This document shows positions 5,654 through 50,239 of a DNA stretch of 64,000 nt, one piece after another. The translations under genes and the position numbers were made by a program. Each line of letters begins with the position of its first letter. Within the stretch, counting starts at the first letter, position 1. The notes under the pieces are model-generated. The model saw only the letters and a program-made list of their open reading frames with translations. It was not told where the DNA came from and searched no databases. Source of the DNA: Saccostrea cucullata (lineage: Eukaryota); the NCBI RefSeq assembly GCF_032062105.1, contig NW_026938926.1, positions 1 through 64,000 on the forward strand. The letters are read 5' to 3'.

Positions 5654-6553
5654 ATCACTATTGCACTTGTAATATAATTTGTATTTCCCGCGTTTTGTCC
5701 CTATGCTTATTATACCCATAAGTCCTTGCAAAATAGCTTAGCCGACCAGAACAATTGAGGCCTGGTCATTCCCGGCAGAGAAGCGTAGCTGCAGACACGT
5801 TTCTGATTCGAAGCAGCTAGTATATGTACATAGCAGCAGTGCATGCAATATTTTACTGGCACGGAGACAGGTCCGTGATAAGTATTACTTATGATATTAT
5901 TTGCTTTGTATATAGTTTTTTTTATGCAAATTTATTATTGATATACTTCTAGTTTTCTATTTCTGAACTTGGCCAGCTTGACCATTTACTCGTTGTTCAC
6001 TCAGGTGTGACGGTTAGCGAGAGTGTTCGAGTGGCTGTTGTATTATATCGATAACGTTTAAAGTTCTCATTGTTAAATGTTCGCTATTTTCTTGTACTCA
6101 GTTTTGTTACTTTGTGTAGAATATTTTGTCCATTTAAAATTTTGGTTTAAATGTCTGGACGGAAGTGAATGACCGGAAGTTGAAAGTAAGGTGTGGATAT
6201 TGGCAGTAATTGTTTTTGACTTGCTTAAACTGGTTACCATTATACTTAATACTTTTTGATTATTTTTATATTGACCATGAATAGCCAAACAAACATAGTG
6301 GTATTGCCAAACATATGTAGTGAAACATGTGACTTATTAATATGCATCATTGTAGCGTCGAAGATATTGGTACTGGATATTGGGTACATGCACTAAGCTG
6401 AGGGGATCGTCTGATCGTGGTGACACAGCGAAAGGTTCCTGGACTAAAGCCCGGAAGGAGGCTGTGTGTGTGATCAAGACTCGGTGATGGTGGACAGACA
6501 CAGAATAACAAGTCAAACCACGTAACGTGATAGTTCGTTAGATGAACACTAGT

Positions 6554-6644
6554 CAGGTTGGGCACACCCCCCCCCATTTGGTTGATCCACTCCCGTTTAG
6601 TGGTCTATAGCCTAAATGGTATACATACATAACTGACCAAATGG
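6554..6644 (+). repeat. Left TIR (~90 bp) of the Academ-like element
   Basis: Imperfect reverse complement of 13735-13823; the outer ~50 bp are nearly identical. Confidence 0.92.
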
Positions 6645-6735
6645 TGGTCTTTTTTCTTCGCGCCAATATTGCATTAAATTAAGAGAAAGGCGCATTTGCA
6701 CGAGCATCAGGAGATGATCTCGAACTCACCCTTGG

Positions 6736-6812
6736 ACTTATATAAGGCGATTCGCCCAACATTTCATGCGGCAATTTCGATAGCGGAGGGAGAGAAAAGT
6801 ACGTAGAAGTAA
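6736..6812 (+). promoter_or_regulatory. Putative TATA promoter and non-coding first exon of the transposase gene
   Basis: TATATAA at ~6739, a GTAAGT donor at ~6809, and an acceptor tttag at 7126 just before the ATG at 7129. Confidence 0.45.
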
Positions 6813-7128
6813 GTAGTACTGTTATTTTGACAACTTAATGCTATATAATTTAAATATACCTCTTAAATGTTGAAAAATTTTCCTGTGAGCTCTTTCTACA
6901 ACTTTCATACTTTACAAATCAAAGCTTCTTATTGATCATGATCATTCAGAACCAATGAAAAGTCCCGTTATAATTAATTACAGCAGCTAAACGTTTGTAC
7001 GGCACATCATTAGAGTACAAAATACATAGATTTTTTTTCTTGGCCATTACAGTATAATGTATATATAGAGAGATTTTAATCAGAGAATTTTTACAAATAT
7101 TCTCTATTGTTGTATAATTTTTTTAGAT

Positions 7129-10100
7129 ATGCCATTTCCCAAGAAATGTAGCATTAAAACCCATGCAACAATTTGCAAGGACTCTGAACAAGGGACCCTT
7201 TTTAGAGTTAGGAAAAAAAGTGAGAAGTGAGCTTATTGAAAAATTAAAGCAAGAGGGGGAACTTAGCCCCAAAGGAACCTACATCTGTGAAAGATGTATT
7301 AAGCATGCTGAGGTAAATTATAAATTAATTTTCCATATTGTATCACTCACACAGGAATGAAAAGGGATAAAAGGAGAGGGGGGGGGGTATTGTTATTTTC
7401 AAATGATTTTCATCCATGCATATATAGTAAAATGTTACATGAAAACGAATTCATGTGAATTAAAAAACAAATTATATACATAAACATCCAGAAATTAAAA
7501 GATACGCCCTCCTTTGCTGTTTTCCTTAAACGATTTGTTTTGTTTGAAAAAAGACTACGACCATGCAATTTTCTCACAGGCAAGAATTGTCCCTAAAAGA
7601 AAAAAAAACACCATTGTTGCAGAGATGGTACAAAATATTGAGAATGGTGTCATCGAAGAAGATGAATTGGAGATGATTATGTGTGCAATTGGTTCGTTTA
7701 TTAATTTTTTTAATCATGTAAAAAAAAAAATGATTACGTTCAGGCACGTAGCATCGTTTTTGAAAGTGGGGGGGGGGGGGGGGGGCAACCTTAGAAAATT
7801 TTTTTACTTGCCGGTAGCCCCCCCCCCCCCCCAAAAAGAAGGAAAATTACTCAAACTCGAAAATCCTATTTCGTGTGTGTGTGTGGGGGGGGGGGGGGGG
7901 GGGTAGTGACCAAATTTTTTCAAGGCAAACTTCCTTTCACTGCCAATTTTTTCCTAAATTTACTTGCTATGTATATACTGTGGTAACAAGTGGGGGGCAA
8001 ACCACCTTTTCAATATACATTTTCTATATTAATCTATAGTAAAGGTAATGCTATCGGAAAAAATGGGGGGCAGCCCCCCCCCCCCCCCCCCGATACTACG
8101 TGCCTGACGTTTGGGTCGGCTGTACATCGTACCTTTCATTGAAATAATTACAGGGAAGGCATATTAATAAATTAATTGCATGAAGTCGCGCCATTTTTTT
8201 CTTTTTCACAGGAAGAAGAGAATCTTTAAAAGTTTTTGATGACAGTTTAGTTGCCGGTTCAATTTATAAAAAAGATGACATGTTAAAACATTTTGATCCA
8301 GCTCGTAAGATTTTTATGCATTTCTAATATTTTTTTTTTAAATTAAATTCATAAATAATATTAAAGTTTTCAAAAATAATTTTAATTAATTATTTTTTGG
8401 AACCTCTTCGTTTTATTTTCATAGGCTACATGTCTGAGAGGAATGGTCCTCTTCTTGCCTTTTTTAAAGGCTTGATGCAGGAGGGGGATTTTTATCAGAA
8501 GGAAAAAGCAGTAGTAATTAGCAGTGCAGTGGACAGCGTTTACTACCTGGTAAACACCAAATTCGTTGCTCCACTTGCATTTGCTAAATCCCTTCTTATA
8601 TACACTAAGACAGGTGGGTTTTTTTTATTATTAATTTTACAATCACGCAATTAAATATTTTCTTAATAAATTTTTAAACATTTTGTTATGATTTTATTAA
8701 ATAAAAAATATTTTTTTATATCCATCTGTATTTATAATTTATATTTATTTATTTACTAATATTGAATTGTTTATGTTATTAGGAAGCAAAGAAGGAGTAA
8801 ATGTTGCTAGTGCTGCATCACCAAGCGGAAGTTATACATCTATACTAAACTGGCTAAAAGCCAACAGCCAAGAGAAAATAAAGATCCCCGATAATTCGGA
8901 TGTTATATCTTTTTTTGATAACAACCAGGTCTTTAAAAATTTCTTTTACTTCAATTTAATTTTTTCAAATTATTTTTTTTTACACGTGTCATTATTTTTA
9001 TTGCGACTTTTAAATTTTATCTTTAAAAAGGTGATTGGTAGAAAATGGCGGGTCAAGAACGATTTCAAGGCGGAGTCATCCGTTATCACTTCTGTGGCTC
9101 ATATGCAGCCCAGAAGTGATATTCAGAGAAACATAGAGCTTGCGCCTTCAAAGTGGCAGAGTTTCCATGTACAGGCGAAGAAGGACTCTCTTGAAAAGTT
9201 GAAAGCGCAAGAAATATTATTTGAAAAAGAGTTCAGTAAATTAAGGTAAAAACTGAAGAGAGAGAGAGAGAGAGATTTTCAAAATTTACTCGTTTATAAT
9301 TTCAAACTTTTATTTCAGACATGGATTTATTTCTAAGAGAATCAATGAGATAAATCAAACAACAATCCGAAGAAGATGGATGGAAGGATCATGTTGACAA
9401 GAAAAAAGACCATCCACGGGAAATAGATCCCCCAAACGAGAGGTTAACGAGGATATATATTTGAAACACAATCGATTGTAAAAGAAATTATATTTTCAAT
9501 AAATGTTTTTATTATTATTATTCAGTTCACTTTCCAGGTGCGAATCCAGAATTTTTTTTCCACTCAAATAAAATACAACCCAGGAATTTCTTGACAAGCA
9601 AAAAAGAAAATAAAACTTAACTCGTTTAAACTTCAAAAACCCATTTCGAAGGGGGGTGGGACTTCTTATACTTAAAAAATTTGACCTTTCATACCAATTT
9701 AAGACAAATTTTCGTTAGCCATGGGGTCTGCGTTTTGCCGAGGGGGTCCATGGTATTTTTTCTTGCTTTAGTGTATAAATTTAATAACCTTGCCAATTCC
9801 TGGGGGGTCAGGTTCAGGGTTCATGCCTTCCATTTACCACCACCCCACCCATTCACCTCCAATCTACAAAATGTAAAACAGACTAAGATTGACACAAGTT
9901 ATATAAATCTAAAGATCAATTTCATTATTTTTAGATACACGTTCATTCCTAGCTGCCATGAAGCAGGGCCAAGCAAGGTTTTTGCTGGAGAACCCATTTT
10001 TGAGAACCCTTGTTCGTATGAGGCTGTAGAGAAGGTTGTATAGTATTCCTTAATTCATATAAATACAAAAAATAATAAATAAATAAATAAAAAAAAATTA

Positions 10101-12171
10101 TATGATGCATAAAATGTTCTATCTGGGAACAGGTGCTTGACCATCTCCTGGAGGAGGCAGAGGTCGGTACGACACGACATTGGACGGCAGTAGGATGTGA
10201 CGGCCTCCCCTACGTTCTCGCCTCGAGGATCATGGAGGAGTTGTATATTTGCCCTACTTGTCGTATCCAATATGACCAAGATGAGTTCATTAACCATATT
10301 GAGACTTCAAAACATGCGAATGATTTGGAGGAAGGAAGGAAATATAGGGATATTTTAATGCTAGCAGGTGTTACACTAATTTCAATTATAATGTGCAAAA
10401 ATCATCATCAATTTTGTTTAATAAAATCAAAATTTGTGCAAATTCTACATTTTTTTTAGGACATGGCCACTTTGAAATTAATATGACGAAGGCCCTTTTC
10501 AAACTCCTTTGGGACGTGTGCTTAATGGAGCTCGCAAAAATGCTGGGCTTCAAGAGTCCGAAGGCCCTTGCAGCATGCCAGGCTGCCCATGGTATAGAAT
10601 TTATAAACTAAAAAAATTTAAAATTGTATCATATTTTTTGTAAAAAAAAATACATAAATTAAAATGCTCCATAAGCGTCGGAATCAAATTGAAAGTGGGG
10701 TTTGGGGGCTAAACCAACAAAAAAAGTAAACCCTTATTTTCATGCCTATATTATGTATATATTTGTAAAAAAAAAAAAAAAAAAAAGGTGGGGAGAGGCT
10801 TAGCCCCCCCCCCCCCTCTTCCGACGCCTATGTGCTCTTCGCAAAACATAGATTTATTTTATATTGCAGATCACCATAAAAGCTGGCAAATTCTGGAAAT
10901 ATTCCTTTTTGCTATGTCTGGTGAGCTCCTTGTGCCCTATGTTCGTCAGGCATTGGAAAAAAAAGAAACGCCTTCCGTTGAAGGGTTTTTAGCCAGCAAC
11001 AAGACCCCTAATGCAGCTTTGATGGCGAAGATTGTTTTTGACCACAGTCTAGCACTTCATGTGTTTAGAGCAGGGGTACGACGCAACAACACAGAGGTCA
11101 TTCTTTGTAGCAGGTCTAAATTTTCCCCATTATTTTTTGGCTTAAACATGCCATTTTACATGGAGGCTTTCGTCAGAGACTCTTTAATTCGGATACAGTG
11201 TCCTCCTGCAGTCAACGAATTTATGAGAAAAAACGAGACGTACACTGTAACTGGGAACGAGAGCAAAGGCGAAGGGGGGGACTTTGTTCTGGAGAACCTC
11301 AACCGCAAAAGCAAAAGCTTCATGCCCCCCGGCCTGCCAACCGACGAGAAATGGCTCACCATAAGCAGAAACATCGACAAATTAGACGAGGTAAAAAATA
11401 TTTATATACACATCATGCACATAAATCGTAATGACGTAGGATTGTTTTAGAAGGGGGCAGATGCAGAGAACAAAATTAAAAGGGAGGGGGTGCCCTAACT
11501 CAGAAATCTTTTTTCTAATGTACATTTTCTATAACAAAAGGTTATGTATCATGGAAAAAAAGTATCCCCCCATTCAACATGCATAAATCCATTGCATCTA
11601 AGATTAAATGAATTTATTTAGAAACAGTTTAAATATACTTTATACTGTATATAGTAATTTTGTTCATATTTTTCAGATCAGACTGAACATGCAGACAATT
11701 ATGGGGCTGACAGATAAAGACTCAGAATATACATACGCATACGACATTAGTGAAGAAATCTCAGCATTTAGACACATAATTAGGGAACGTAAATATTTAC
11801 AAAAACAATCACTCACTACACTCTCAAATAAACCTTTAGACAGTGCATTCTTACATTTTGCAGAACATGCACAAGAAAACAAAGACTCGCATTACACACA
11901 CATACAAACACACGCACTCTCATCTAGACTTAAACACACACCTATATTTATTTTTCAAGAACACAGAGAAAAGCACACCAACATCGCAAACAAAACAAAA
12001 GCTGAAATATCTACACACATTGAGACACAGTTGGACACATTGAAATCACATACACTAAGCCAGAAATGGAAAAAAGTGAAAAACTTGAAAAAATCTGTTC
12101 TTTTAGAATTTCTTAAAGAACTAAATGAAATTAAGGATGCTGAAAGCCAGAGCGAGTCAGATGTAGAATAA
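7129..12171 (+). CDS. Academ-superfamily-like DDE transposase, 12 coding exons, roughly 850 aa, a few frameshifts in this copy
   Basis: Approximate GT-AG exons: 7129-7312, 7580-7691, 8212-8304, 8425-8613, 8783-8928, 9031-9245, 9319-9442, 9935-10033, 10133-10367, 10460-10591, 10869-11390, 11677-12171. Motifs in order: ISFFDNNQ (D1), EPIFENPCS, AVGCDGLPY (D2), CPTC-x11-H-x5-H, GHGHFEINM, FRAGVRRNN...PLFFG...Y, GDFVLENLNRKSK (E). This matches the Academ pattern D..D..GxxH..RxxN..DxxxExxNxxxK. Confidence 0.8.
7741..8106. mobile_element. MITE (366 bp) in transposase intron 2, left arm only
   Basis: 16-bp TIRs CAGGCACGTAGCATCG / CGATACTACGTGCCTG. TSD ACGTT at 7736-7740 and 8107-8111. Empty site with a single ACGTT at ~54345 in the right arm. 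Confidence 0.92.
10670..10832. mobile_element. MITE in transposase intron 10
   Basis: TIRs CATAAGCGTCGGAA / TTCCGACGCCTATG and 5-bp TSD TGCTC. Same family as 63609-63961; mirrored at ~51556-51711. Confidence 0.85.
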
Positions 12172-12235
12172 AGGTATGAATATCTATAATTTTTGCAAAT
12201 TACTCGCTTGAGAAAAAAAATTAATTAGCAAGCAT

Positions 12236-13307
12236 TTATTTCTTAACACCTAAATGTTTAGGACAAAAAAATTTTAAATTTTTCAGAGCATTTTTTCGGA
12301 AGGCAGTAACCCCCATGCACCAGGCATGCCTCCAGAAGGAGCAATCCTTTACTTCACAACCCACCCACAGCTTGCTCTCCGATAGAGACTCTCCACAGAT
12401 CCGACAGCAAGACTCGTCAGCCGAATCTCCTCCGAAGGTTGATTCTGTCGTTTGGGTGCTGGCCTCTTTAAAAGTTGGCGATGAAGCCGATGTAAGATGT
12501 GCAGAAGACGTAGAGGGAGAAGATGGCAAAGTAGGCGATGCAGGGGCAGATGGAGAAGCAGAGGATGACGCACAGGACATTGATGTTTCAATAGTCGCGA
12601 CCTTGTGTACATAATTATGTTATATTATTATTAATTTGCATTGTTGTACATGTATATAAATTTAATATTTATTTAAATCAAATGTATAGATGACAGAGTT
12701 TTTCACAGTTGTACCTTTTTGAAATTTGGACTGGAATATTCATACACTATTCCTGAAGCAGGTGCCCTCATTGTCAGTGAAACCTCTGCTGAAGTTGCTG
12801 TATATATATCTTGAACCTGTGCCATGTTAAAAATCTTTTAAAACTATGACACCTTTTAAGAATGTACATATTTGTTTTTTAATGATATGATTTTTTAAAC
12901 TTTGATATAACTCTTTAAAAACTTTGAATGCATGTTCATAAATATATGCTTTTTTTTGTTTTTTGTTTGTTTGTTTGTTTGTTTTTTTTTTACATTTTCA
13001 ATGATTTTTATGATTCCATTACCATGATTATTAAAGAGTTATTAATCAAAATTTCGGTGCGTTTTTTTAATTAGGCGGTTAGTAACAAAGCTGGAATTAA
13101 AACAAAAAGTGTTTCTGATCGTGTAATTATGTAATATAAGATGTCTTGAACATGCTTTTGAATGAATACACACCTTTTCAAGAAGTGTATCCTTTCGTTT
13201 GTTGAAGGAGCGTATCATCTTTTTCTGGTCTGTTAATATTTTGGTGGGGTCCTTCTTTTTTTAATTTGTCTTAAAATGGTTACTTTGCCACCTCTTGTAG
13301 TTTTTTT
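12236..13307 (-). CDS. Transposon accessory gene: MADS-box-like domain, Ser/Pro-rich linker, PHD finger (3 exons)
   Basis: Exons 13307-13174, 12816-12715 and 12601-12236 have GT-AG ends and phase-0 joins. Product: KKTTRGGKVTILRQIK...MIRSFNKRKDTLLEK|VQDIYTATSAEVSLTMRAPASGIVYEYSSPNFKK|VATIETSMSC...CCRICGESLSESKLWVGCEVKDCSFWRHAWCMGV...FFCPKH. This copy has a 1-nt deletion in the A-run at ~13256-13262. The start codon is not resolved. Confidence 0.8.
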
Positions 13308-13397
13308 CTACACAATATGAAAAAAATGAATAGAGAATGCATTTATTGAAAATTTACACAAACGGCGCTCCGTATTAAAGTTTGAGCTTTCGACCGA

Positions 13398-13428
13398 AGT
13401 TTATATAGATCAAGAGATTTGATTGGCT
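13398..13428 (-). promoter_or_regulatory. Putative CCAAT and TATA promoter of the MADS-PHD gene
   Basis: Minus-strand AGCCAAT is followed ~20 bp later by CTATATAAAC, ~95 bp upstream of the first coding exon, firing inward from the right end of the element. Confidence 0.5.
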
Positions 13429-13734
13429 ACAATTGTTTTGAAGTAACCCGGATAATTGGAATCGAAAGTAGAATGTTTGGAGAAGGGGCTCCTCATGTGA
13501 ATTTTGAAGCATTTGGATTAATTGTAAGGTAATATTATGCAAAAATAATGGCCATAATCAGGATTTTACTTAGCATACCTGAAATTTGCACACCCAGGCG
13601 CACAAATTTCCACATGCAATGTTCCATTTTTTTATGTTTAAAGACACGAGGAACCTAAATTACTTACCACTCCTGTCATCTTAGTGCGCCGAGTTAAAAA
13701 GCAGGTGTAAATCGAAAAACACGAAAAGTAACTC

Positions 13735-13823
13735 CCATTTGGTCAGTTAACAATGTATACGATTTGGTTGATTGACCACCAAACGGGAGTGGATCAACCA
13801 AATGGGGGCGTGTGCCCAACCTG
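13735..13823 (-). repeat. Right TIR (~90 bp) of the Academ-like element
   Basis: Ends ...GTGCCCAACCTG and is followed by the CTAGT TSD. Confidence 0.92.
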
Positions 13824-14679
13824 CTAGTGGCAAACCTGACATGCATGGTTTTATGTATATGATGATCATGATGATGATGGTGATGATGACGATGAGGATG
13901 ATGATCGATGATACGGAGACGATCACTACATTGGGAAACGTTTGGCATTAATTCAAAAATTGAGACATTGATTGATAACTGAGATATATACCCGGGGTAG
14001 ATGTGTCGTTGATTGTTAATTGGTTACCAAGATAATTGTTTTTTTTTGGTTAACTTTTTAATAGTGAGCAAGGGGTGTGGATCAGAGTGCGGTAGATGGT
14101 GTGAGGTTTTTGCTATTATTATTATTTTTTTTTGTAAATAAATTTATTAAACTTATTGAACTTGTGTGATTCTTGGAGAAAGCCAGCTTGACCACGTGAC
14201 ATAATTCATCTCAAAATACATTCATTCGTAACCATTTATACTGAATAAATTTATCGACTATACAATCAATAGGAGAACAATTTATCGAATAGATTAACAC
14301 GTTTCTAAACCGGAAGTACATCGTATAGAAGAGTTCCAAAACTGTCAAACATGTGCCAAAAGAAGTTTAGACTGTTTACAGGTACCAAATCAATTAAGTA
14401 ACACTAAACAAACAACAATCACATACTTTTACGCACAGTAATAAGTTGCTATATATACGTAAGTTATAATCTACAAATGACCCACTTTACAAATCTCCTG
14501 TCAAACTCTAATTCAGTTCGAATTATCTCTGTCATGTTTACATTGCCAACATACTATGATACTACAATTTACTCTTGATTTCAAGTATTTATAAATACAA
14601 TTACATAACTTAGGTACAACTTTGCGAACAGCACATTCATAGTAAAACAAAATAAAACTTCTTGAATAAACAAACTTCA

Positions 14680-14923
14680 TCAACCCGCTCCAAATCACTA
14701 TAAAGCATGATAGCATATTACAGACATTGACTCTATTTGATAGAAAAATCAACCCGCTCCAAGCTCACACAATTACAGTAAAGTATTACAGTCATTGACT
14801 CAGCATGAATAAACACTATATTGTGGATTAAATAATCAACCCGCTCCAAGCTCACACAATTACAGTAAAATATTACAGTCATTGACTCAGCATGAATAAA
14901 CACTATATTGTGGATTAAATAAT
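14680..14923. repeat. Short tandem duplication (88-bp unit x2 plus a diverged partial unit)
   Basis: CAACCCGCTCCAA at 14681, 14750 and 14838; the last two units are nearly identical. Mirrored at ~47490-47731. Confidence 0.85.
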
Positions 14924-15635
14924 GAATGTCATATACCCTAACTACATGACATAAAAATTAAAAGGGGGGGGGGGGGTCACATACACTACAATTGGATAAT
15001 TTTATAAACCACATCTATTAAAAATCTTTTGTACAAATGATATCCATGAGTTTTTCATTTCTCTTTATCATGTTGTTTATGTAAATACATATATACTATT
15101 CTAGACAATTTTGTTTTCTTTTTCATTCACAAGTTTTGCCCAATATTTTTATCATTCTTGAGTAAATATTTATGTGTAATGGAAACCTTCCCAGTTTCTT
15201 TATAAATCATATAACTTGGGAGTGCTACTTTTCAAATTCATATATGTTTTAAATAATTAAAATGTACTCGTTCAATAATATCGATATGTGACTCGCCATG
15301 AGATTTTTGGCCCAAATGCGGCAAAACGTAATAATGAAAAAAACGTCACAATCAACGTTTACAAAAAAGCGTGAATTTCGCGCACTTGTTAAAATAATTG
15401 CAGGATGAATTTAAATTGTGTAATGTTTAAAGACTTTTTTATATAAACAAAAATAATAAGAAAATCGATCTTATTTTGATTTAAGTATTATTGAAAGTTT
15501 TCGAGGGAAAAAAATCGAGATTATTTAGAGTTATTCCCCGTAAGACTAACTCTTCTTTAGTTTCCGAGTTGTTGGTGTAAACAATCATGGCGTCTCGAGA
15601 AATGAGGGAGATTTAAACTGAATAGAATCGCCGGA

Positions 15636-18600
15636 ATGGAAAGCTGCAGCCAACTAAGCCAGTCAAGTGCAGTTTCTAATGCAAGTACAATCCCCCCGGA
15701 AATAGTAGAAAACGAAGATGAAGAATTTGTAAACGAAATAAATCGAGTGAATGACCTATATTTGGAACTTGTCAAACACATCGGATGTCGACCCGGAATA
15801 TCACTCTGATAACGCAGAGAGCTCTGACGAAAATGAAAGCGATGGAGAAATAGGAGATCGAGAAAATTTAGTACCAATAAGAGCAGAGTGAGGTAGATAG
15901 AATGAAATTGACCAATTTCAAAAGTTTAATTCTAAAACATGCGGTTGTTCTCGACTCTACGGAAAACCATGTAGTGAGGTCGTCGATTTAGAATCTTTGC
16001 TTGAATACAGAAACACGTGCCTGGAAATGAACAAGGAGGAACTAGATATGATGATCAAAGTGCAATTATTTCACCATCGGCGAAATGACAAAGTTACTAG
16101 TGCAAAGAAACATAGATCAAAAGAAAGGGAGAGAATCAGACAAGAATATTTTTTTAATGGACATCAAGTGTGTAGAGAAACATTTGCGTTTTGCCATGGA
16201 GTTTATAGGAAGACGGTGGACGCGCTTGCTCGTTCCCTTGATAAGGATGGACTCGCTCCTAGAATTCATGGAAACATTGGTAAACATCCAAAGCATGCCC
16301 TCACTGTAAATGATGTTCAATCTGTAAAAGATTTTCTAACATCTTATGGAAACAAGTTAGGTTTACCGTTACCAGGAAGACTGCCAAACTAAAGAGATAG
16401 TAGAGCTAAAGTGTTGCACTCTGATAAGACCAAGGCTGATATACATCAGGACTATTTGTTAGCTGCAGAGAGTCTACATTTGAGAAAGATATGTTTGTCA
16501 GAATTTAAAAGAGTTTGGCTGAATATATGTCCACATGTTCTAATTAGCAAGCCTTCAACAGACCTATGTTATAAATGCCAATCCTATGCGAATATCCTGG
16601 TTCATGGTGGCATGATGACAGAAGAGGAAAAGGAGCAACATCTTGAGAAATACACAGCTCATGTTGAAAAATCAAAGATGCAGAGGGATTATTACAGAAG
16701 GCAATGTGAAGTTTCTAAAACTAGCTTTTCTGCTCTTCCAAATGAGAGAAAAACCAGAGGTAACAATTTATTATATGATTCAAGTAATATTGTTTGAAAT
16801 TAGTTAATCATTTATGCATTAGTTCTGTTAAATTAGTGATTTTTCTTAATCAATTGGCTATTGATATTTTCCCTAGGTCAGCCCATCTGTTCTTTGGAGG
16901 GAACTCAACATTACAGTTTTGATTATGCCCAGCAAATACATTATCCACATTATGCGCAACAGGTTGGTCCTTTGTTCTTCAAAACCCCACGGAAATGCCA
17001 GTGTTTTGGAATCGGTTCAGAGGGTTCAGGTAATTTTTTAGAACGTCAAACACAAGACTACAATAGTCTAATTGATTTTTTAGCATTACTCTTTTAGTTC
17101 AATGATAGAAAATAAAATTTATAGATTCATGTACAAGTTTACTACTACTAGTCTAACAAATTTAATTTATAAAACAGACTAGGCAGTGCATTTAATTGGC
17201 TAATACATGCAACCTGTAAATTTAGAATTATATTTTAGAAATGCACCTTTTCATAAAAAAAAATTGAAGTAAAAGAATAATTAACTTTTTCAGTGCAAAC
17301 ATTTTTTTGTGAACTTTTATCCAGGATCACAGATATTTTACTTGATTGATGAGTCTCAGCATTCTGGAAAGGGGGCCAACTCTGTTGCCAGTATGATTCA
17401 CCACCATTTTCAACATAAAGGTTATGGAGAAATGAATTTACAACTCCATATGGACAACTGCACTGGTCAAAATAAAAACAACACTGTTATTGGGTATGTA
17501 TTTCCAATCCAACTGTCTATATTTTAACTACCATTTGTGTGGATGGTATTTTTGCAAAATTAATACAATAGGTGTCTTCATGTCAAATACATCCATGTTT
17601 ACATGTGGTACATGTAATGAAATACACTGGCAAAATTATTTTCAATTCATTTGTTCTCTTTGATTAGTTTAGTTCTGATAATGAAGTTCTTTAGAAGTGC
17701 ATTTAGAGATCTTGTCTCTTTTGAATTTTATTTTAAAAGAATGTCTTGTAGATATGGGATGTGGCGAGTTATGACCGGCAGACATATGACCATTGAGTTT
17801 TCTCTGATGGAGGCAGGCCACACAAAGTTTCATCCCGACTGGCATTTTGGGCTCTGGAAGGTGAAATGGCGAGGAACAACTGCAGAGAATCTTGAGGAAG
17901 TGGCCAAATCCGTTGCTCATTCATCTAGGAATAACCATAAATTCCCCACTTGATAGGATCCCCAGTATCCAGTCATTTTCTATGACTGGAGCACGTTTCT
18001 CAAGCAGTACTTCAAGCCAATACCTCAACTCAAGCAGTATCATCATTTTCGGTATGCATTATATTGCCTGTGTTTTTTAGCAATTAATTTATTGGAGGTT
18101 GAGTTATCACAGAACAACAAATGCACAGAGAGGCATAGATAAGATCTTCAAGTATACTGTAGACATACTTTTTTCCACGCTGTCATAATTCTGTGGAATC
18201 TTGATTTTTGTTTAATCTGCAGGTAGAAAATCATGTGGATTTCTTAACTGTCCCTATATATACCTTACATGTTTATTAAGTATGCTTGGACAAATTTCCG
18301 TGAAAAATTTGTGACCGCGTACATACCGTAAATTAATACCATACGAAAAAAGTACTTCTATGGTATTATATTTTTTTTTCATTTTATCTAATTTGGTCTG
18401 AATTTCATGACTTTAGTAAAACCAGCAAATTTCAGACCAAAACATCAAAATTAATTTAGTATTTTTCTTTATACCTGATCATCTTATTAAATATATATAT
18501 TTGGTGTTTGTTTGTCATATATTCTTTTATTTTCTTATGCTTGTATAATTTATCCCTCAATTAAAAATCTTTATGTTGTCAAATTAAAAAAAATTACATG

Positions 18601-19217
18601 AACATGTATACAAAAAAAAAAAAAAATCCCCAAAAGCAAACACCAAATACATCAGATTTAAGCCCATGTTGACAAATGCAAATTTTAAGTATAAGCATGA
18701 TAAGGTTATGAATTCTGTTAGCATTGAATTTTGAAAATTTTTGTATACATGTATGCTGCTAAAAACAGAACTGAAAAGAAATTCTTAACTAATTCTAACT
18801 GCCATGACTGTGCTCCTTCAATATCTTTTGCATTAAGCTGTCGATAAATATATTTTAAAAAAAACAATATATGTTGGAAGATCTAACATCTTTGACTTTT
18901 GCAGCATGACACATGAACATCCTGGAGTAGTCCATCTACGAAAGTATGCTGGAGATGAAGAAATTACTGTCAACATCCTGAAACACAAAGATTTCAGGTT
19001 TCCAAACATGGATGCCTCTCTTCCAACTGTTATTAAAGCATGTGGCCTTGACGCACAGCGACAGTGGTATTTATACGACGAGGTGGCCCCATACTGTGCC
19101 AGTCATGAGGCATGTCCCCGCCCAAGTGTACCAAAACCATCAGCCATAAAAGTTGAACAGAAAGTGAAATTAGGAAAGAGAAAATGTGCAAATGAACATT
19201 GTAACAAATCAATGTAA
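15636..19217 (+). pseudogene. Sola transposase, 5 exons, disrupted in this copy
   Basis: Approximate exons 15636-16759, 16877-17029, 17325-17493, 17752-18051, 18905-19217. Motifs HYSFDYAQQ, DNCTGQNKN and GHTKFHPD. Frameshifts near 15765, 15880 and 17945 and a stop at 16390, relative to the right-arm copy. Confidence 0.85.
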
Positions 19218-19399
19218 TTTACATGCTGTCATGGATGTTAAGAGTTTGATTTTATCTAGTTCTTAAAACTGTTATATTCTGTTGTATTAATTTGATCAAA
19301 CAATATGTGTTTCAGAATGAAATGACATCTATTTCAAATTGTGTTACTTCATTGCTTTTATGTAACTTTAAAGTCGCAGAAATCACCAATATCAGATAA

Positions 19400-19809
19400 A
19401 GCAAGATGTGTTCATGAAACACTATGTACCCAGTGGTCCCTAAGTTTGAAAAAACTATTTTTAGTATATAGGTCACAATCAAGGTGACAAGGTCATTAAC
19501 CTTGGTGTCATTTGAAAAAACTTAATTTAGTGGAGTACGCATAGAAAGTATGAAGTTTCTATCTCGTATTGTTAAAGATGTATTGCAAAGGTTAAAAAAG
19601 ACTATTTTTAGCAAATACAAGTAGGTCACAGTCAAGGTCACAAGGTCATTGGCCTTGGTGTCATTTGAAAGAGCTTGGTTACTGGAATATGCATACCAAA
19701 TATGAGGTTTCTATCTCTCATGGTTCAAAAGTTATGGCAAAGGTTAACATTTAAAGATAGACAGGACAAAAACAGTATGCGCTCCTGATCTACCGATCCG
19801 GGCGCATAA
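19400..19809. mobile_element. Small Helentron/HINE-like non-autonomous element inside the Sola 3' region
   Basis: Two ~150-bp units containing ggtcacaaggtcattgaccttggtgtcatttgaaa and a terminal hairpin-like gatc...gatc. Related sequence lies at ~33890-34125; mirrored at ~42603-43012. Confidence 0.5.
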
Positions 19810-20598
19810 CAACCAATTAGTAAAGTCCAATTTTCTTGACAATGAATAGGGATATCAAAGAAAAAACAACAGATAGTTGTTACTGGGGGTCATCTCTACT
19901 AGATAGTATAAAAATCTCATTTTCTCTCAGGTACCTCATTTGGGCCAAAATTCTCATGGCTTGTCATATTTTCATAACCCTATTTTTCACAGCCATATAA
20001 CAATACTGGTAAAACTACTTTATCAAACAAATTCAATTGACATTCGAAGGGGAGATTATATGCTTAATTTTACTATCACACCATACATCGCCTTTGGTGC
20101 TTGTTCGCTTAGGTGTTTTCTTGCTTTACACAACTAGCCTGTACGAGAAAATAAAATCCTCAAATAATTCAAATCCTTGACTACTTCTATGACACTGTAT
20201 CTTGTTTCTTTATATTCACACATAATTTTCATTTTTCACAATATTTGCAAAATTCATTTAATGCTCTCTAAAGATCTTCAGCAGTTTCCTCAAGAATTAC
20301 AGTATCATCGGCATAAAATAAAACAAACAGTTTCATTTTGAAGCCAAAACGCATTGCAGCTCGTTTCAGTTTTTTTTTCTTTTCATTTCGACATTTCCTT
20401 TGTTCAATACAGCATATTAAAACAATGTTTTTATTTTGTTTTATAAAAAACAATGACATCATTTTATGTTCAACTTAAGATTAGAAAATGTAAAATTTTG
20501 CATTCTAAAATATTGATCGATTAGACGCTTTTTAGGTGCTTTTTAATGTGTTTGTCTTTTTCCATTCTAACAATATACACTTTAAAACGTGACGTTTA

Positions 20599-21589: not shown

Positions 21590-22706
21590 TGACCAAACTT
21601 GGTACGAAGCATCCTTGGTTGAAGGGGATTTTAAATTGTGAAAATGAAGGGCCAAGTCCCCTCACAAGGGGAGATAATCAAGAAAAGACAAAAATAGGGT
21701 GGGGTCATTAAAAAATCTTCTTCTCAAGAACCACTGGGCCAATAAAGCTGAAACTTATGTGGAAGCATCCTGGGGTAGTGTAGATTTTAAATCGTTCAAA
21801 CCATGACCCCCGGGGGTTGGGCGGGGCCACAATGGGGAATCAAAGTTTTACATAGAAATATATAGGAAAAATCTTTAAAAATCTTCTTCTCAAGAACCAC
21901 TGGGCCAGAAAAGCTGAAACTTATATGGAAGCACCCTGGGTAGTGTTAGGTTCTAAATTGTACAAATCATGACCCCCGGGGATAGGGCGGGGCCACAATG
22001 GGGAATCAAAGTTTTACATAGAAATATATAGGAAAAATCTTTAAAAATCTTCTTCTCAAGAACCACTGGTCCAGAAAAGCTGAAACTTATGTAGAAGCAC
22101 CCTGGGGTAGTGTAGATTGTAAATTGTTCAAATCATGACCCCCGGGGGAAGGGCGGGGCCACAATGGGGAATCATAGAAATATATAAGAAAAAATCTTTG
22201 AAAATCTTCTTGTCAAGAACCACTGGGCCAGGAAAGATGAAACTCATGTGGAATCATCCTCAGGTAGTGTAGATTCAAGTTTGTTCAAATCATGACCCCC
22301 GGGGGTAGGGCGGGGCCACAATGGGAAATCAAAGTACTACATAGAAATATATAGGGAAAAATCTTTGAAAATCCTCTTCTCATGAATCACTGGGCCAGAA
22401 AAACTGAAACTTATGTTGAAGCACCCTGGGATAGTGTAGATTGTAAATTTTTCAAATCATGACCACCGGGGGTAGGGTGGGGTCACAATGGGGAATCAAA
22501 GTTTTATATAGAAATATATAAGAAAAATCTTTTAAAATCTTCTTCTCAAAAACCACTGGGCCAGAAAAGCTGAAACTTATGTGGAAGCTTCCTGGGGTAG
22601 TGTAGATATCAAATTGTTTAAATTATTATCATTGTGGTAGGGTGGGGTCACAATATGTATTACAAGGGGGAAATCTGGTTAAAAAAAAAAACAGAATGGT
22701 CAAAGA

Positions 22707-39675: not shown

Positions 39676-40796
39676 GTCTTTGACCATTCTGTTTTTTTTT
39701 TCAGATTTCCCCCTTGTAATACATATTGTGACCCCGCCCTACCCCAATGATCATAATCTAAACAATTTGAAATCTACACTACCTCAGGATGCTTCCACAT
39801 AAGTTTTAGCTTTTCTGGCCCATGGTTATTGAGAAGATTTTTAAAGATTTTTCCTATATATTTCTATATATAAAATTTTGATTCCCCATTTTGACCCCGC
39901 CCTACCTCCTGGGGTCATGATTTGAAAAATTTACAATCTACACTATCCCAGGGTGCTTCAACATAAGTTTCAGTTTTTCTGGCCCAGTGATTCATGAGAA
40001 GAGGATTTTCAAAGATTTTTCCCTATATATTTCTATGTAGTACTTTGATTTCCCATTGTGGCCCCGCCCTACCCCCGGGGGTCATGATTTGAACAATTTA
40101 CAATCTACACTACCCAAGGGTGCTTCCATATAAGTTTCAGCTTTTCTGGCCCTGTGGTTCTTGAGAAGAAGATTTTCAAAGATTTTTCCTATATATTTCT
40201 ATGTAAAACTTTGATTCCCAATTGTGGCCCCGCCCTTCCCCCAAGGGTCATGATTTGAAGAATTCAGAATCTACATTATACCAGGATGCTTCTACATAAG
40301 TTTCAGCTTTTCTGGACCAGTGGTTCTTGAGAAGAAGATTTTTAAAGATTTTTCCTATATATTTCTATGTAAAACTTTGATTCCCCATTGTGGCCCCGCC
40401 CTATCCCCGGGGGTCATGATTTGTACAATTTAGAACCTACACTACCCCAGGGTGCTTCCATATAAGTTTCAGCTTTTCTGGCCCAGTGGTTCTTGAGAAG
40501 AAGATTTTTAAAGATTTTTCCTATATATTTCTATGTAAAACTTTGATTCCCCATTGTGGCCCCGCCCAACCCCCGGGGGTCATGGTTTGAACAATTTAAA
40601 ATCTACACTACCCCAGGATGCTTCCACATAAGTTTCAGCTTTATTGGCCCAGTGGTTCTTGAGAAGAAGATTTTTTAATGACCCCACTCTATTTTTGTCT
40701 TTTCTTGATTATCTCCCCTTGTGAGGGGACTTGGCCCTTCATTTTCACAATTTAAAATCCCCTTCAACCAAGGATGCTTCGTACCAAGTTTGGTCA

Positions 40797-42446: not shown

Positions 42447-45400
42447 GACAAGCCATGAGAATTTTGGCCCAAATGAGGTACCTGAGAGAAAATGAGATTT
42501 TTATACTATCTAGTAGAGATGACCCCCAGTAACAACTATCTGTTGTTTTTTCTTTGATATCCCTATTCATTGTCAAGAAAATTGGACTTTACTAATTGGT
42601 TGTTATGCGCCCGGATCGGTAGATCAGGAGCGCATACTGTTTTTGTCCTGTCTATCTTTAAATGTTAACCTTTGCCATAACTTTTGAACCATGAGAGATA
42701 GAAACCTCATATTTGGTATGCATATTCCAGTAACCAAGCTCTTTCAAATGACACCAAGGCCAATGACCTTGTGACCTTGACTGTGACCTACTTGTATTTG
42801 CTAAAAATAGTCTTTTTTAACCTTTGCAATACATCTTTAACAATACGAGATAGAAACTTCATACTTTCTATGCGTACTCCACTAAATTAAGTTTTTTCAA
42901 ATGACACCAAGGTTAATGACCTTGTCACCTTGATTGTGACCTATATACTAAAAATAGTTTTTTCAAACTTAGGGACCACTGGGTATATAGTGTTTCATGA
43001 ACACATCTTGCTTTATCTGATATTGGTGATTTCTGCGACTTTAAAGTTACATAAAAGCAATGAAGTAACACAATTTGAAATATATGTTATTTCATTCTGA
43101 AACACATATTGTTTGATCAAATTAATACAACAGAATATAACAGTTTTAAGAACTGGATAAAATCAAACTCTTAACATCCATGACAGCATGTAAATTACAT
43201 TGATTTGTTACAATGTTCATTTGCACATTTTCTCTTTCCTAATTTCACTTTCTGTTCAACTTTTATGGCTGATGGTTTTGGTACACTTGGGCGGGGACAT
43301 GCCTCATGACTGGCACAGTATGGGGCCACCTCGTCGTATAAATACCACTGTCGCTGTGCGTCAAGGCCACATGCTTTAATAACAGTTGGAAGAGAGGCAT
43401 CCATGTTTGGAAACCTGAAATCTTTGTGTTTCAGGATGTTGACAGTAATTTCTTCATCTCCAGCATACTTTCGTAGATGGACTACTCCAGGATGTTCATG
43501 TGTCATGCTGCAAAAGTCAAAGATGTTAGATCTTCCAACATATATTGTTTTTTTTAAATATATTTATCGACAGCTTAATGCAAAAGATATTGAAGGAGCA
43601 CAGTCATGGCAGTTAGAATTAGTTAAGAATTTCTTTTCAGTTCTGTTTTTAGCAGCATACATGTATACAAAAATTTTCAAAATTCAATGCTAACAGAATT
43701 CTTCATAACCTTATCATGCTTATACTTAAAATTTGCATTTGTCAACATGGGCTTAAATCTGATGTATTTGGTGTTTGCTTTTGGGGATTTTTTTTTTTTT
43801 TGTATACATGTTCATGTAATTTTTTTAATTTGACAACATAAAGATTTTTAATTGAGGGATAAATTATACAAGCATAAGAAAATAAAAGAATATATGACAA
43901 ACAAACACCAAATATATATATTTAATAAGATGATCAGGTATAAAGAAAAATACTAAATTAATTTTGATGTTTTGGTCTGAAATTTGCTGGTTTTACTAAA
44001 GTCATGAAATTCAGACCAAATTAGATAAAATGAAAAAAAATATAATACCATAGAAGTACTTTTTTCGTATGGTATTAATTTACGGTATGTACGCGGTCAC
44101 AAATTTTTTGCGGAAATTTGTCCAAGCATACTTAATAAACATGTAAGGTATATATAGGGACAGTTAAGAAATCCACATGATTTTCTACCTGCAGATTAAA
44201 CAAAAATCAAGATTCCACAGAATTATGACAGCGTGGAAAAAAGTATGTCTACAGTATACTTGAAGATCTTATCTATGCCTCTCTGTGCATTTGTTGTTCT
44301 GTGATAACTCAACCTCCAATAAATTAATTGCTAAAAAACACAGGCAATATAATGCATACCGAAAATGATGATACTGCTTGAGTTGAGGTATTGGCTTGAA
44401 GTACTGCTTGAGAAACGTGCTCCAGTCATAGAAAATGACTGGATACTGGGGATCCTCTACAAGCTGGGGAATATTATGGTTATTCCTAGATGAATGAGCA
44501 ACGGATTTGGCCACTTCCTCAAGATTCTCTGCAGTTGTTCCTCGCCATTTCACCTTCCAGAGCCCAAAATGCCAGTCGGGATGAAACTTTGTGTGGCCTG
44601 CCTCCATCAGAGAAAACTCAATGGTCATATGTCTGCCGGTCATAACTCGCCACATCCCTATATCTACAAGACATTCTTTTAAAATAAAATTCAAAAGAGA
44701 CAAGATCTCTAAATGCACTTCTAAAAGAACTTCATTATGAAACTAAACTAATCAAAGAGAACAAATGAATTGAAAATAATTTTGCCAGTGTATTTCATTA
44801 CATGTACCACATGTAAACATGGATGTATTTGACATGAAGACACCTATTGTATTAATTTTGCAAAAATACCATCCACACAAATGGTAGTTAAAATATAGAC
44901 AGTTGGATTGGAAATACATACCCAATAACAGTGTTGTTTTTATTTTGACCAGTGCAGTTGTCCATATGGAGTTGTAAATTCATTTCTCCATAACCTTTAT
45001 GTTGAAAATGGTGGTGAATCATACTGGCAACAGAGTTTGCCCCCTTTCCAGAATGCTGAGACTCATCAATCAAGTAAAATATCTGTGATCCTGGATAAAA
45101 GTTCACAAAAAAATGTTTGCACTGAAAAAGTTAATTATTCTTTTACTTCAATTTTTTTTATGAAAGGGTGCATTTCTAAAAATGTAATTCTAAATTTACA
45201 GGTTGCATGTATTAGCCAATTAAATGCACTGCCTAGTCTGTTTTATAAATTAAATTTGTTAGACTAGTAGTAGTAAACTTGTACATGAATCTATAAATTT
45301 TATTTTCTATCATTGAACTAAAAGAGTAATGCTAAAAAATCAATTAGACTATTGTAGTCTTGTGTTTGACGTTCTAAAAATTACCTGAACCCTCTGAACC

Positions 45401-47127
45401 GATTCCAAAACACTGGCATTTCCGTGGGGTTTTGAAGAACAAAGGACCAACCTGTTGCGCATAATGTGGATAATGTATTTGCTGGGCATAATCAAAACTG
45501 TAATGTTGAGTTCCCTCCAAAGAGCAGATGGGCTGACCTAGGGAAAATATCAGTAGCCAATTGATTAAGAAAAATCACTAATTTAACAGAACTAATGCAT
45601 AAATGATTAACTAATTTCAAACAATATTACTTGAATCATATAATAAATTGTTACCTCTGGTTTTTCTCTCATTTGGAAGAGCAGAAAAGCTAGTTTTAGA
45701 AACTTCACATTGCCTTCTGTAATAATCCCTCTGCATCTTTGATTTTTCAACATGAGCTGTGTATTTCTCAAGATGTTGCTCCTTTTCCTCTTCTGTCATC
45801 ATGCCACCATGAACCAGGATATTCGCATAGGATTGGCATTTATAACATAGGTCTGTTGAAGGCTTGCTAATTAGAACATGTGGACATATATTCAGCCAAA
45901 CTCTTTTAAATTCTGACAAACATATCTTTCTCAAATGTAGACTCTCTGCAGCTAACAAATAGTCCTGATGTATATCAGCCTTGGTCTTATCAGAGGGCAA
46001 CACTATAGCTCTACAATCTCTGTAGTTTGGCAGTCTTCCTGGTAACGGTAAACCAAACTTGTTTCCATAAGATGTTAGAAAATCTTTTACAGATTGAACA
46101 TCATTTACAGTGAGGGCATGCTTTGGATGTTTACCAATGTTTCCATGAATTCTAGGAGCGAGTCCATCCTTATCAAGGGAACGAGCAAGCGCGTCCACCG
46201 TCTTCCTATAAACTCCATGGCAAAACGCAAATGTTTCTCTACACACTTGATGTCCATTAAAAAAATATTCTTGTCTAATTCTCTCCCTTTCTTTTGATCT
46301 ATGTTTCTTTGCACTAGTAACTTTGTCATTTCGCCGATGGTGAAATAATTGCACTTTGATCATCATATCTAGTTCCTCCTTGTTCATTTCCAGGCACGTG
46401 TTTCTGTATTCAAGCAAAGATTCTAAATCGACGACCTCACTACATGGTTTTCCGTAGAGTCGAGAACAACCGCATGTTTTAGAATTAAACTTTTGAAATT
46501 GGTCAATTTCATTCTTATCTACCTCACTCTGCTCTATTGGTACTAAATTTTCTCGATCTCCTATTTCTCCATCGCTTTCATTTTCGTCAGAGCTCTCTGC
46601 GTTATCAGAGTGATATTCTGGGTCGACATCCGATGTGTTTGACAAGTTTCCAAAATATAGGTCATTCACTCGATTTATTTCGTTTACAAATTCTTCATCT
46701 TCGTTTTCTACTATTTCCGGGGGGATTGTACTTGCATTAGAAACTGCACTTGACTGGCTTAGTTGGCTGCAGCTTTCCATTCCGGCGATTCTATTCAGTT
46801 TAAATCTCCCTCATTTCTCGAGACGCCATGATTGTTTACACCAACAACTCGGAAACTAAAGAAGAGTTAGTCTTACGGGGAATAACTCTAAATAATCTCG
46901 ATTTTTTCCCTCGAAAACTTTCAATAATATTTAAATCAAAATAAGATCGATTTTCTTATTATTTTTATTTATATAAAAAAGTCTTTAAACATTACACAAT
47001 TTAAATTCATCCTGCAATTATTTTAACAAGTGCGCGAAATTCACGCTTTTTTGTAAACGTTGATTGTGACGTTTTTTTCATTATTACGTTTTGCCGCATT
47101 TGGGCCAAAAATCTCATGGCGAGTCAC
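42447..47127 (-). mobile_element. Sola DNA transposon (mirror copy)
   Basis: Same TIRs and ATAT flanks as 15288-19965. Confidence 0.88.
43195..46780 (-). CDS. Sola DDD transposase, near-intact copy
   Basis: Exon 1 (46780-45655) is fully open (acidic N-terminus, CGC, CRETF, CYKC). Later exons carry SFDYAQQ, DNCTGQNKN and GHTKFHPD. One apparent 1-nt insertion at the start of exon 4 (~44659). Confidence 0.85.
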
Positions 47128-49101
47128 ATATCGATATTATTGAACGAGTACATTTTAATTATTTAAAACATATGTTGAATTTGAAAAGTAGCACTCCAAG
47201 TTATATGATTAATGAAGAAACTGGACGGTTTCCATTACACATAAATATTTACTCAAGAATGATAAAATATTAGGCAAAACTTTTGAATGAAAAAGAAAAC
47301 AAATTGTCTAGAATAGTATATATGTATTTACATAAACAACATGATAAAGAGGAAATGAAAAACTCATGGATATCATTTGTACAAAAGATTTTTAATAGAT
47401 GTGGTTTATAAAATTATCCAATTGTAGTGTATGTGACCCCCCCCCCCCTTTTAATTTTTATGTCATGTAGTTAGGGTATATGACATTCATTATTTAATCC
47501 GCAATATAGTGTTTATTCATGCTGAGTCAATGACTGTAATATTTTACTGTAATTGTGTGAGCTTGGAGCGGGTTGATTATTTAATCCACAATATAGTGTT
47601 TATTCATGCTGAGTCAATGACTGTAATACTTTACTGTAATTGTGTGAGCTTGGAGCGGGTTGATTTTTCTATCAAATAGAGTCAATGTCTGTAATATGCT
47701 ATCATGCTTTATAGTGATTTGGAGCGGGTTGATGAAGTTTGTTTATTCAAGAAGTTTTATTTTGTTTTACTATGAATGTGCTGTTCGCAAAGTTGTACCT
47801 AAGTTATGTAATTGTATTTATAAATACTTGAAATCAAGAGTAAATTGTAGTATCATAGTATGTTGGCAATGTAAACATGACAGAGATAATTCGAACTGAA
47901 TTAGAGTTTGACAGGAGATTTGTAAAGTGGGTCATTTGTAGATTATAACTTACGTATATATAGCAACTTATTACTGTGCGTAAAAGTATGTGATTGTTGT
48001 TTATTTAGTGTTACTTAATTAATTTGATACCTGTAAACAGTCTAAACTTCGTTTGGCACATGTTTGACAGTTTTGGAACTCTTCTGTACGATGTACTTCC
48101 GGTTTAAGAAAAACGTGTTAATCTATTCGATAAATTGTTCTCCTATTGATTGTATAGTCGATAAATTTATTGAGTATAAATGGTTACGAATGAATGTATT
48201 TTGAGATGAATTATGTCACGTGGTCAAGCTGGCTTTCTCCAAGAATCACAAAAGTTCAATAAATTTGATAAATTTATTTACAAAACGAATAATAATAATA
48301 ACAAAAACCTCACACCATCTACCACACTCTGATCCACACCCCGTACTCACTATTAAACAGTTAATAAAAAAAAAACAATTATCTTGGTAACCAATTAACA
48401 ATCAACCAATCTACCCCGGGTATATATCTCAGTTATCAATCAATGTTTCAATTATTGAATTAATGCCAAACGTTTTCCAACGTAGTGATCGTCTCCGTAT
48501 CATCGATCATCATCCACATCGTCATCATAACCATCATCATGATCATCATATACATAAAACCATGCATGTCAGGTTTGCCACTAGCAGGTTGGGCACACAC
48601 CCCCATTTGGTTGATCCACTCCCGTTTGGTGGTCAATCAACCAAATCGTATACATTGTTAACTGACCAAATGGGAGTTACTTTTCGTGTTTTTCGATTTA
48701 CACCTGCTTTTTAACTCGGCGCACTAAGATGACAGGAGTGGTAAGTAATTTAGGTTCCCTCGTGTCTTTAAACATAAAAATATGGAACATTGCATGTGGA
48801 AATTTGTGCGCCTGGGTGTGCAAATTTCAGGTATGCTAAGTAAAATCCTGATTATGGCCATTATTTTTGCATAATATTACCTTACAATTAATCCAAATGC
48901 TTCAAAATTCACATGAGGAGCCCCTTCTCCAAACATTCTACTTTCGATTCCAATTATCCGGGTTACTTCAAAACAATTGTAGCCAATGAAATCTCTTGAT
49001 CTATATAAACTTCGGTCGAAAGCTCAAACTTTAATACGGAGCGTCGTTTGTGTAAATTTTCAATAAATGCATTCTCTATTCATTTTTTTCATATTGTGTA
49101 G

Positions 49102-50175: not shown

Positions 50176-50239
50176 ATGCTCGGTAGTTAATTTTTTTTTT
50201 CAAGCGAGTAATTTGCAAAAATTATGAATATTCATACCT

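Follow-up and report, generated by a model that had tools for sequence, protein, structure and literature searches.

The stretch of DNA analysed here, called the window in what follows, comprises positions 1 to 64,000 of contig NW_026938926.1 from Saccostrea cucullata and contains no N letters. Between positions 6554 and 13823 it carries a 7,270-bp DNA transposon with a predicted DDE transposase gene and, convergent with it, a second gene for a protein that joins a MADS domain to a PHD finger. The element starts with CAGG, ends with CCTG and is directly abutted on each side by CTAGT, and its terminal inverted repeats (TIRs), 86% identical across 91 bp (E-value 2e-23; ungapped arm of 92 nt), are by far the longest inverted repeat of the region. 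These observations agree with the original prediction, made from the letters of the window, which had described TIRs of about 90 bp, a CTAGT duplication and two spliced genes meeting tail to tail; 12 and 3 coding exons with AG/GT sites were found, with 64 bp between the stop codons and one AATAAA per strand. The inward-facing TATA boxes that it had also noted at both ends are present, as TATATAA, at 6739 (+) and 13407 (-), and their position suggests that they act as promoters. TIRs together with a target-site duplication (TSD) of fixed length were found at independent insertions, as is characteristic of DDE cut-and-paste TIR transposons, and we read the element as an autonomous-type cut-and-paste DNA transposon.

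The copy at 6554-13823 is broken as assembled: the frame is lost twice in gene 1, near 7213 and near 9352, and once in gene 2, near 13257. Two of these three breaks sit in A-runs and could be assembly errors. A second copy elsewhere in the window is open at all three sites and has frameshifts and stops of its own. The frame breaks, this duplicate and a nested 366-bp miniature inverted-repeat transposable element (MITE) had gone unmentioned in the prediction. The features are as follows.

6549-6553, no strand: left TSD, CTAGT
6554-6644, + strand: left TIR, begins CAGGTTGGGCAC; 86% identical to the right TIR over 91 bp
6739-6745, + strand: TATA-like box toward gene 1, putative function
End near 6808, + strand: probable non-coding first exon, with a GTAAGT donor next to it; the Tegillarca element is laid out alike; putative function
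7127-7312, + strand: gene 1 exon 1, with the ATG at 7129 and a zinc-binding Cys/His motif for the N-terminus; frame break near 7213 in an A-run, open in copy 2
7580-7691, + strand: gene 1 exon 2
7741-8106, no strand: nested 366-bp MITE in intron 2; CAGG...CCTG ends and its own TSD, ACGTT; missing from copy 2
8212-8304, + strand: gene 1 exon 3
8425-8613, + strand: gene 1 exon 4
8783-8928, + strand: gene 1 exon 5; first catalytic Asp (FFDNNQ) at 8917-8919
9031-9245, + strand: gene 1 exon 6
9319-9442, + strand: gene 1 exon 7; frame break near 9352, where copy 2 is open
9935-10034, + strand: gene 1 exon 8
10133-10367, + strand: gene 1 exon 9; second catalytic Asp (GCDG) at 10199-10201, with an optional C2H2 finger after it
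10460-10591, + strand: gene 1 exon 10; conserved GxGH histidine at 10468-10470
10870-11390, + strand: gene 1 exon 11; catalytic Glu (DFxxExxN) at 11292-11294
11677-12171, + strand: gene 1 exon 12, including the stop; AATAAA at 12167
12236-12601, - strand: gene 2 last exon, encoding a linker rich in Ser and Pro and the PHD finger with its two cage Trp; AATAAA at 12240
12715-12816, - strand: gene 2 middle exon, encoding the C-terminal half of MADS
13174-13307, - strand: gene 2 first coding exon, encoding the basic N-terminal half of MADS; frame break near 13257 in an A-run, open in copy 2
13401-13407, - strand: TATA-like box toward gene 2, putative function
13735-13823, - strand: right TIR
13824-13828, no strand: right TSD, CTAGT
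48585-55533, - strand: second copy, 92-94% identity, same flanks, inside a 26-kb inverted duplication

Gene 1 (+ strand, 7127-12171) has about 848 codons and AG/GT sites throughout its 12 coding exons, and the junctions of exons 8-12 are the same in RefSeq models P0191 and P0197. Profile searches were run exon by exon, with database proteins as stand-ins for the full-length products. None of the gene 1 exons matched a Pfam transposase family in these searches, and exon 11 retrieved 655 homologous 50%-clusters, the named homologs being from bivalves, sea urchins and lancelets. DUF6589 is matched by 27 of the 79 homologs that were aligned (best E-value 2.7e-12; P0017 exceeds the cut-off), and no Pfam XPG or helicase domain was found among the 79. 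The catalytic residues are conserved in alignment A1 (first D in 37/38, second D in 63/63, E in 78/78), as is the GxGH motif (67/68), and the four corresponding codons of the window, at 8917, 10199, 11292 and 10468, are intact. The clades of this transposase span 25-60% identity; the tree is a quick, unrooted one in which the window row fills 39% of the columns, and it gives a rough grouping only. Three introns of gene 1 (~9555-9870, ~10670-10835 and ~11450-11600) hold GC-tract inserts that resemble small non-autonomous elements and are present in both copies.

In AlphaFold models of two natural homologs (predicted local distance difference test scores of 90 and 95), strand 1 carries the first D, the second D comes past a later strand and the E sits on a helix beyond a large helical insertion, which is an RNase H-like topology. 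When the full-length models were compared by Foldseek with the PDB and viral libraries, no significant match was obtained; with the core only, 21 of the 46 PDB matches listed were Hermes, P, RAG1 or ISCth4 transposases. It tells against the fold assignment that none of these is individually significant (best E-value 0.17; best transposase probability 0.44, template modelling score about 0.35, to P). We take the gene 1 product to be a DDE transposase with an insertion domain and a probable, divergent RNase H fold.

A lineage with a MADS partner gene

Relatives were fetched by transposase similarity only and not by gene 2. Including the window, nine TIR-bounded loci were recovered, representing seven families and three phyla (bivalves, sea urchin, lancelet), and every one of them has a convergent MADS gene and CAG...CTG-type ends. 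The left ends are all CAGG or CAGT, and the TIR sequences diverge between families past the first 4-6 bases. A distinct two-gene lineage had been predicted, to be refuted if TIR-bounded copies lose gene 2; none of the nine does. Two Tegillarca copies of 6.6 kb (L001 and L005), with 41-bp CAGG TIRs and a MADS and PHD partner, are 99.6% identical, lie on different chromosomes and are flanked by different 5-bp TSDs (TTGAA and TTAAC). The element is thereby shown, or at least closely supported, to move as a unit with both genes and to leave a 5-bp duplication at new insertions. A partner with MADS and PHD is also encoded by Saccostrea L004 (8.7 kb, 82-bp TIR at 100%, TSD ATAAA), Pinctada L014 (6.1 kb, 68-bp TIR, TSD TTGAA) and Mercenaria L002 (261-bp TIR at 99%). 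In all, perfect 5-bp TSDs, mostly different from each other, are present at six loci; against this stand three loci (L002, L003 and L012) with unmatched flanks. In five of the six elements (that of the window, L001, L004, L005 and L014) the second letter of the TSD is T and the third and fourth are each A or G; CCATA of L013 and ACGTT of the nested MITE break the pattern, and the cases are too few to speak of a target preference.

The remaining families differ in what follows the MADS domain. The Lytechinus element (L012; 34-bp CAGT TIR) encodes MADS, an acidic linker and a chromodomain, and the two Branchiostoma elements (L003 and L013), which have CAGT ends in common and a TSD (CCATA) in L013, encode MADS followed by a Gly/Arg tail, with no reader. 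Branchiostoma elements have a third annotated gene of 174-195 aa (L013:18355-19357 and L003:17998-18980, both + strand), upstream of the MADS gene and divergent from it, and the L003 copy is swollen to 17.6 kb, with five tandem units of about 1 kb directly inside its left TIR (L003:4394-9430). The tail-to-tail layout that had been predicted holds for the window element; in Tegillarca and Saccostrea L004 the genes are instead interdigitated, and the final intron of the transposase gene houses the last two exons of gene 2. At locus L015, where no TIR was detectable, a MADS-like frame (E-value 1e-3) without a reader lies directly downstream of the transposase gene in the same orientation, in tandem. 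An EnSpm/CACTA-like element (L015:16000-20281, - strand; 682-aa frame with a DUF4218 match, and a partner gene) adjoins this pair. Four short metagenome contigs have an antisense PHD exon directly past the catalytic exon, and the L007, L011 and L016 contigs end too early to show a partner gene.

The prediction had seen neither an XPG nuclease nor a helicase in the element, and this stands: no reading frame or convincing motif of either kind is present in the window element, and no such frame was found among the seven families scanned. Three Walker-A-like matches in the seven elements have no DExH partner and no helicase-sized frame, and no DExH motif was detected. A viral or prokaryotic origin was rejected, with no relative in viral contigs and a single one from a prokaryotic bin, on a 1-kb contig (L016:403-930) of the Candidatus Thiodiazotropha metagenome-assembled genome of isolate CTENA6, a clam symbiont, which is probably DNA of the host clam.

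Gene 2 (- strand) is encoded by three coding exons with AG/GT sites (13307-13174, 12816-12715 and 12601-12236) and has about 200 codons. Both domain calls of the prediction were borne out. The PHD exon exceeds the Pfam cut-off (PF00628, 24.6-26.6 bits vs 24). The MADS domain is divided by an intron over two exons, neither of which scores by itself in Pfam when scanned separately, and the call is tied to P0202, a spliced homolog of 188 aa from C. virginica that exceeds the SRF-TF cut-off (PF00319, 29.9 bits vs 26) and shares 60%, 76% and 66% identity with the three window exons, the first taken from the in-frame copy 2. In the PDB, the MADS domain of P0202 matches SRF, MCM1 and MEF2, SRF at an E-value no better than 0.006. 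The Lytechinus partner also exceeds the SRF-TF cut-off (26.5-29.2 bits vs 26), and its reader is a CBX/Polycomb-type chromodomain (55 bits; best match CBX2, E-value 2e-16). Both cage tryptophans are kept in 8/8 aligned PHDs, for which the best PDB matches are the ALFIN-like and BPTF PHDs, known readers of H3K4me3. Of the MADS and PHD combination proposed at the outset, MADS is the constant part of the partner, while PHD, replaced by a chromodomain in Lytechinus and missing from Branchiostoma, is one of several interchangeable C-terminal modules.

Gene capture by transposons is frequent, and gene 2 could be a captured host fragment carried as a functionless passenger. The domain after MADS varies, and gene 2 is broken in both window copies, in Mercenaria L002 and in Branchiostoma L003. 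However, it is kept in 9/9 TIR-bounded loci across three phyla and across all that transposase divergence, and it shows a codon-position pattern of purifying selection. Between families, third positions differ more than second positions in 5/5 comparisons of gene 2 exons, as in the transposase; the difference is clear in four (0.57-0.72 vs 0.33-0.43) and weak in one. Its MADS domain has also diverged along with the element, and the low similarity of P0202 to SRF therefore argues against a recent host capture. We consider a passenger role very improbable. The lineage itself is real, recently active and widespread, and is defined by CAG...CTG termini, a 5-bp TSD, a DUF6589-related DDE transposase and a second gene with a constant MADS domain.

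Possible roles of the MADS protein

In DDE transposition the catalytic triad cuts the ends of the element and joins them to the target. The transposase (D 8917, D 10199, E 11292) would accordingly bind the TIRs, excise the element and join it to target DNA with a 5-nt stagger. The MADS protein would dimerise, bind or bend DNA and serve as an accessory subunit alongside the transposase, and its C-terminal slot, PHD or chromodomain, would read methylated histone H3 and bias the complex toward marked chromatin. With middling confidence, we favour the view that the MADS protein is a dedicated cofactor that ties the transpososome to marked chromatin, mainly because two unrelated methyl-lysine readers share one slot with their cages intact. 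That the partner helps or directs the transposase, as the original prediction had it, is to this degree plausible. The PHD of RAG2 is put to the same use for RAG1 (PMC8355894).

Two observations weigh against this role. The terminal 300 bp of the seven families show no excess of canonical CArG/MEF2 sites (CArG 1 vs 0.4 expected; CArG with one mismatch 6 vs 8.1; MEF2 1 vs 1.3), so direct binding of the TIRs by MADS is unsupported, and the partners of Branchiostoma and L015 have no reader, therefore chromatin reading is not essential to the lineage. The site counts also bear on a second explanation, that the partner is a sequence-specific end-binder for excision and synapsis, as are the Harbinger Myb protein and TnpA of CACTA, and that the readers were added later. 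MADS is the invariant part of the partner, DNA is bent by MADS dimers, and relaxed CC(W)4-6GG sites occur seven times vs 2.2 expected, though five of the seven belong to the window's own TIR pair. These CC(A/T)4-5GG motifs are not common to the other families, whose TIRs diverge almost from the start, and the N-terminal zinc module of the transposase could bind the ends by itself. An end-binding role thus seems improbable to us.

The main rival, in our judgement less likely than the cofactor role, is that the MADS protein is a regulator that keeps the element expressed, binding its promoters or chromatin and activating transcription or countering silencing, as do MURB of MuDR and VANC of Vandal elements. 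MADS domains are transcription-factor domains, the Ser/Pro-rich or acidic linkers of gene 2 resemble activation domains, both genes have TATA boxes near the ends, and recruitment to the chromatin of the element itself could just as well be what the chromodomain or PHD serves. Even so, no common MADS-site motif was found near the ends in the seven families. The roles of cofactor and regulator are not mutually exclusive.

If the cofactor reading is extended to the whole lineage, it would be an undescribed, superfamily-level sister of Academ, spread across bilaterians, whose transposase depends on a MADS subunit with a swappable histone-reader slot, so that different families aim at different chromatin. 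We put this forward tentatively, as somewhat less probable than the cofactor role. In that case, PHD families would be directed to H3K4me3 and chromodomain families to H3K27/K9me; a system like RAG1-RAG2 would have evolved here independently, and its families would be transposases that nature has retargeted. MADS domains are known from very few animal host genes (SRF, MEF2), and one that is kept with a transposase across molluscs, echinoderms and chordates joins Harbinger-Myb and RAG1-RAG2 as a new pairing of transposase and partner. Since PHD and chromodomain replace each other in one slot, it becomes testable whether histone readers borne by transposons steer insertion, and whether a RAG2-like role has arisen more than once; the near-identical Tegillarca copies at different sites are natural young templates for such assays. 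The arrangement recalls RAG1 and RAG2, which rearrange antibody genes, and may show how a transposon picks its landing site. The lineage is also a candidate source of non-autonomous CAGG...CCTG elements with 5-bp duplications, and it accounts for many gene models annotated as 'uncharacterized' or 'ALFIN-like PHD' in bivalve genomes.

Duplicated copies and neighbouring repeats

Copy 2 was rejected as an independent insertion, because its flanks are identical to those of copy 1 and positions 1-26130 of the window are an inverted duplicate of 62115-36294 (10-kb spacer; substitutions 3.6% overall, 0.3-8% per 2-kb bin). This 26-kb inverted duplication may be a true segmental duplication or an uncollapsed haplotype. 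Of two RefSeq models of S. cucullata annotated 'uncharacterized', P0191 corresponds to copy 1 and P0197 to copy 2, down to residues that distinguish the copies. As the nested MITE is found in copy 1 only and copy 2 has the empty site, an enzyme with the CAGG...CCTG and 5-bp TSD signature was probably active after the duplication. The TIR sequence of the MITE is unlike that of its host element, and it may stem from a sister family.

A second, unrelated TIR element lies at 15279-19976 (+ strand; 43-bp arms, 81%), with a duplicate near 43300-46800 (- strand). Its transposase-like gene is fragmented, one piece matches DUF7869 (E-value 5e-5), and we take the element to be Sola-like. A tandem array with a 166-bp unit occurs at 21711-22623 and 39725-40675, in unequal copy number between the duplicate arms, and further arrays are found at 14747-14923 (87 bp), 42665-42943 (152 bp) and 34654-34865 (27 bp).

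Comparison with known transposon groups

Literature searches, which did not extend to Repbase and Dfam, turned up no transposon that has a MADS partner. Since oyster repeats are heavily curated in these two databases, we put at roughly a quarter the chance that they already list the family, perhaps as Academ. The lineage is apparently undescribed, with a new gene content, and possibly of superfamily level.

As in Academ, the lineage has a large DDE transposase and long TIR elements in marine invertebrates, but it differs in its 5-bp TSD, in having a separate MADS gene and no XPG or helicase, and in carrying the PHD in the second protein and not in the transposase. The sole link to Academ that was tested, the DUF6589 match, which we take to be the fungal AcademH transposase family, suggests membership in a wider Academ group. 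The motif order GxxH ... N(H/Y)xxY ... DxxxExxN presumably agrees with that of Academ as well. A profile search aimed at true Academ proteins returned only members of the lineage. The label 'Academ-type' given in the original prediction was not established, and 5 bp misses the published TSD lengths of 3-4 bp for AcademX and 9-10 bp for AcademH (PMC10045372). AcademX was rejected on this length and on the lack of XPG in the 79 homologs (by Pfam) and in the seven elements (by motif and spare frame), and AcademH/AcademHP on the length and the lack of a superfamily-2 helicase. Academ elements are abundant in bivalves (PMC10294476).

The 5-bp TSD, the convergent genes and the PHD raised the possibility of a RAG-like or Transib element. 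In the CMCT clade, the RAG-like, TransibSU and ProtoRAG elements are two-gene TIR elements with a 5-bp TSD, CA...TG ends and a second protein ending in PHD (PMC4411706, PMC8355894, PMC12730594), features that recur in the lineage, the PHD in its bivalve families. In addition, a RAG1_imp_bd (Chapa-type) region is found at the N-terminus of 8/79 homologs, and RAG1 structures recur weakly in the fold search. However, RAG-like and Transib elements have CAC ends and a Kelch propeller partner, whereas the lineage has CAG ends and MADS, and the PDB profile searches gave no sequence match to a RAG1/Transib core, only C2H2 fingers. Identity with them was rejected on termini, core sequence and partner fold, and we read the shared architecture as convergent. 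The CMCT clade is characterised by CA...TG termini and a 2-5-bp TSD (PMC12730594), which the lineage has; its C(2)C/H(3-4)H arrangement is lacking. The C(2)C and H(4)H that are present both belong to a single local C2H2 finger past the second Asp, which is lost in several homologs and absent altogether from P0008, P0014 and P0199, for example, and no H(3-4)H was found ahead of the catalytic Glu in the homolog alignment.

Chapaev elements have a 4-bp TSD and CAC ends. Some homologs share with them the Chapa-type N-terminal zinc finger, but the window protein and most homologs have no Chapa match, and a second Chapaev gene is not reported in the consulted literature. In a transposase subgroup, the N-termini of P0111, P0042, P0063 and P0066 carry the Chapa/RAG1 finger, which has been described as confined to Chapaev, TransibSU and RAG1 (PMC4411706), and this widens the known range of that finger.

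PIF/Harbinger and KolobokP elements also pair a DDE transposase with a dedicated second gene, which in KolobokP is a convergent HNH gene (PMC9587614), and in Harbinger the partner is, as here, a DNA-binding protein of transcription-factor type (Myb/SANT). Their TSDs (TTAA in Kolobok, 0-4 bp in PHIS), termini and partner domains differ from those of the lineage, and none of the 79 homologs matched a PIF/Harbinger or Kolobok transposase family in Pfam. By analogy, the element may nonetheless work like other two-component DDE elements, such as Harbinger and the RAG-like transposons.

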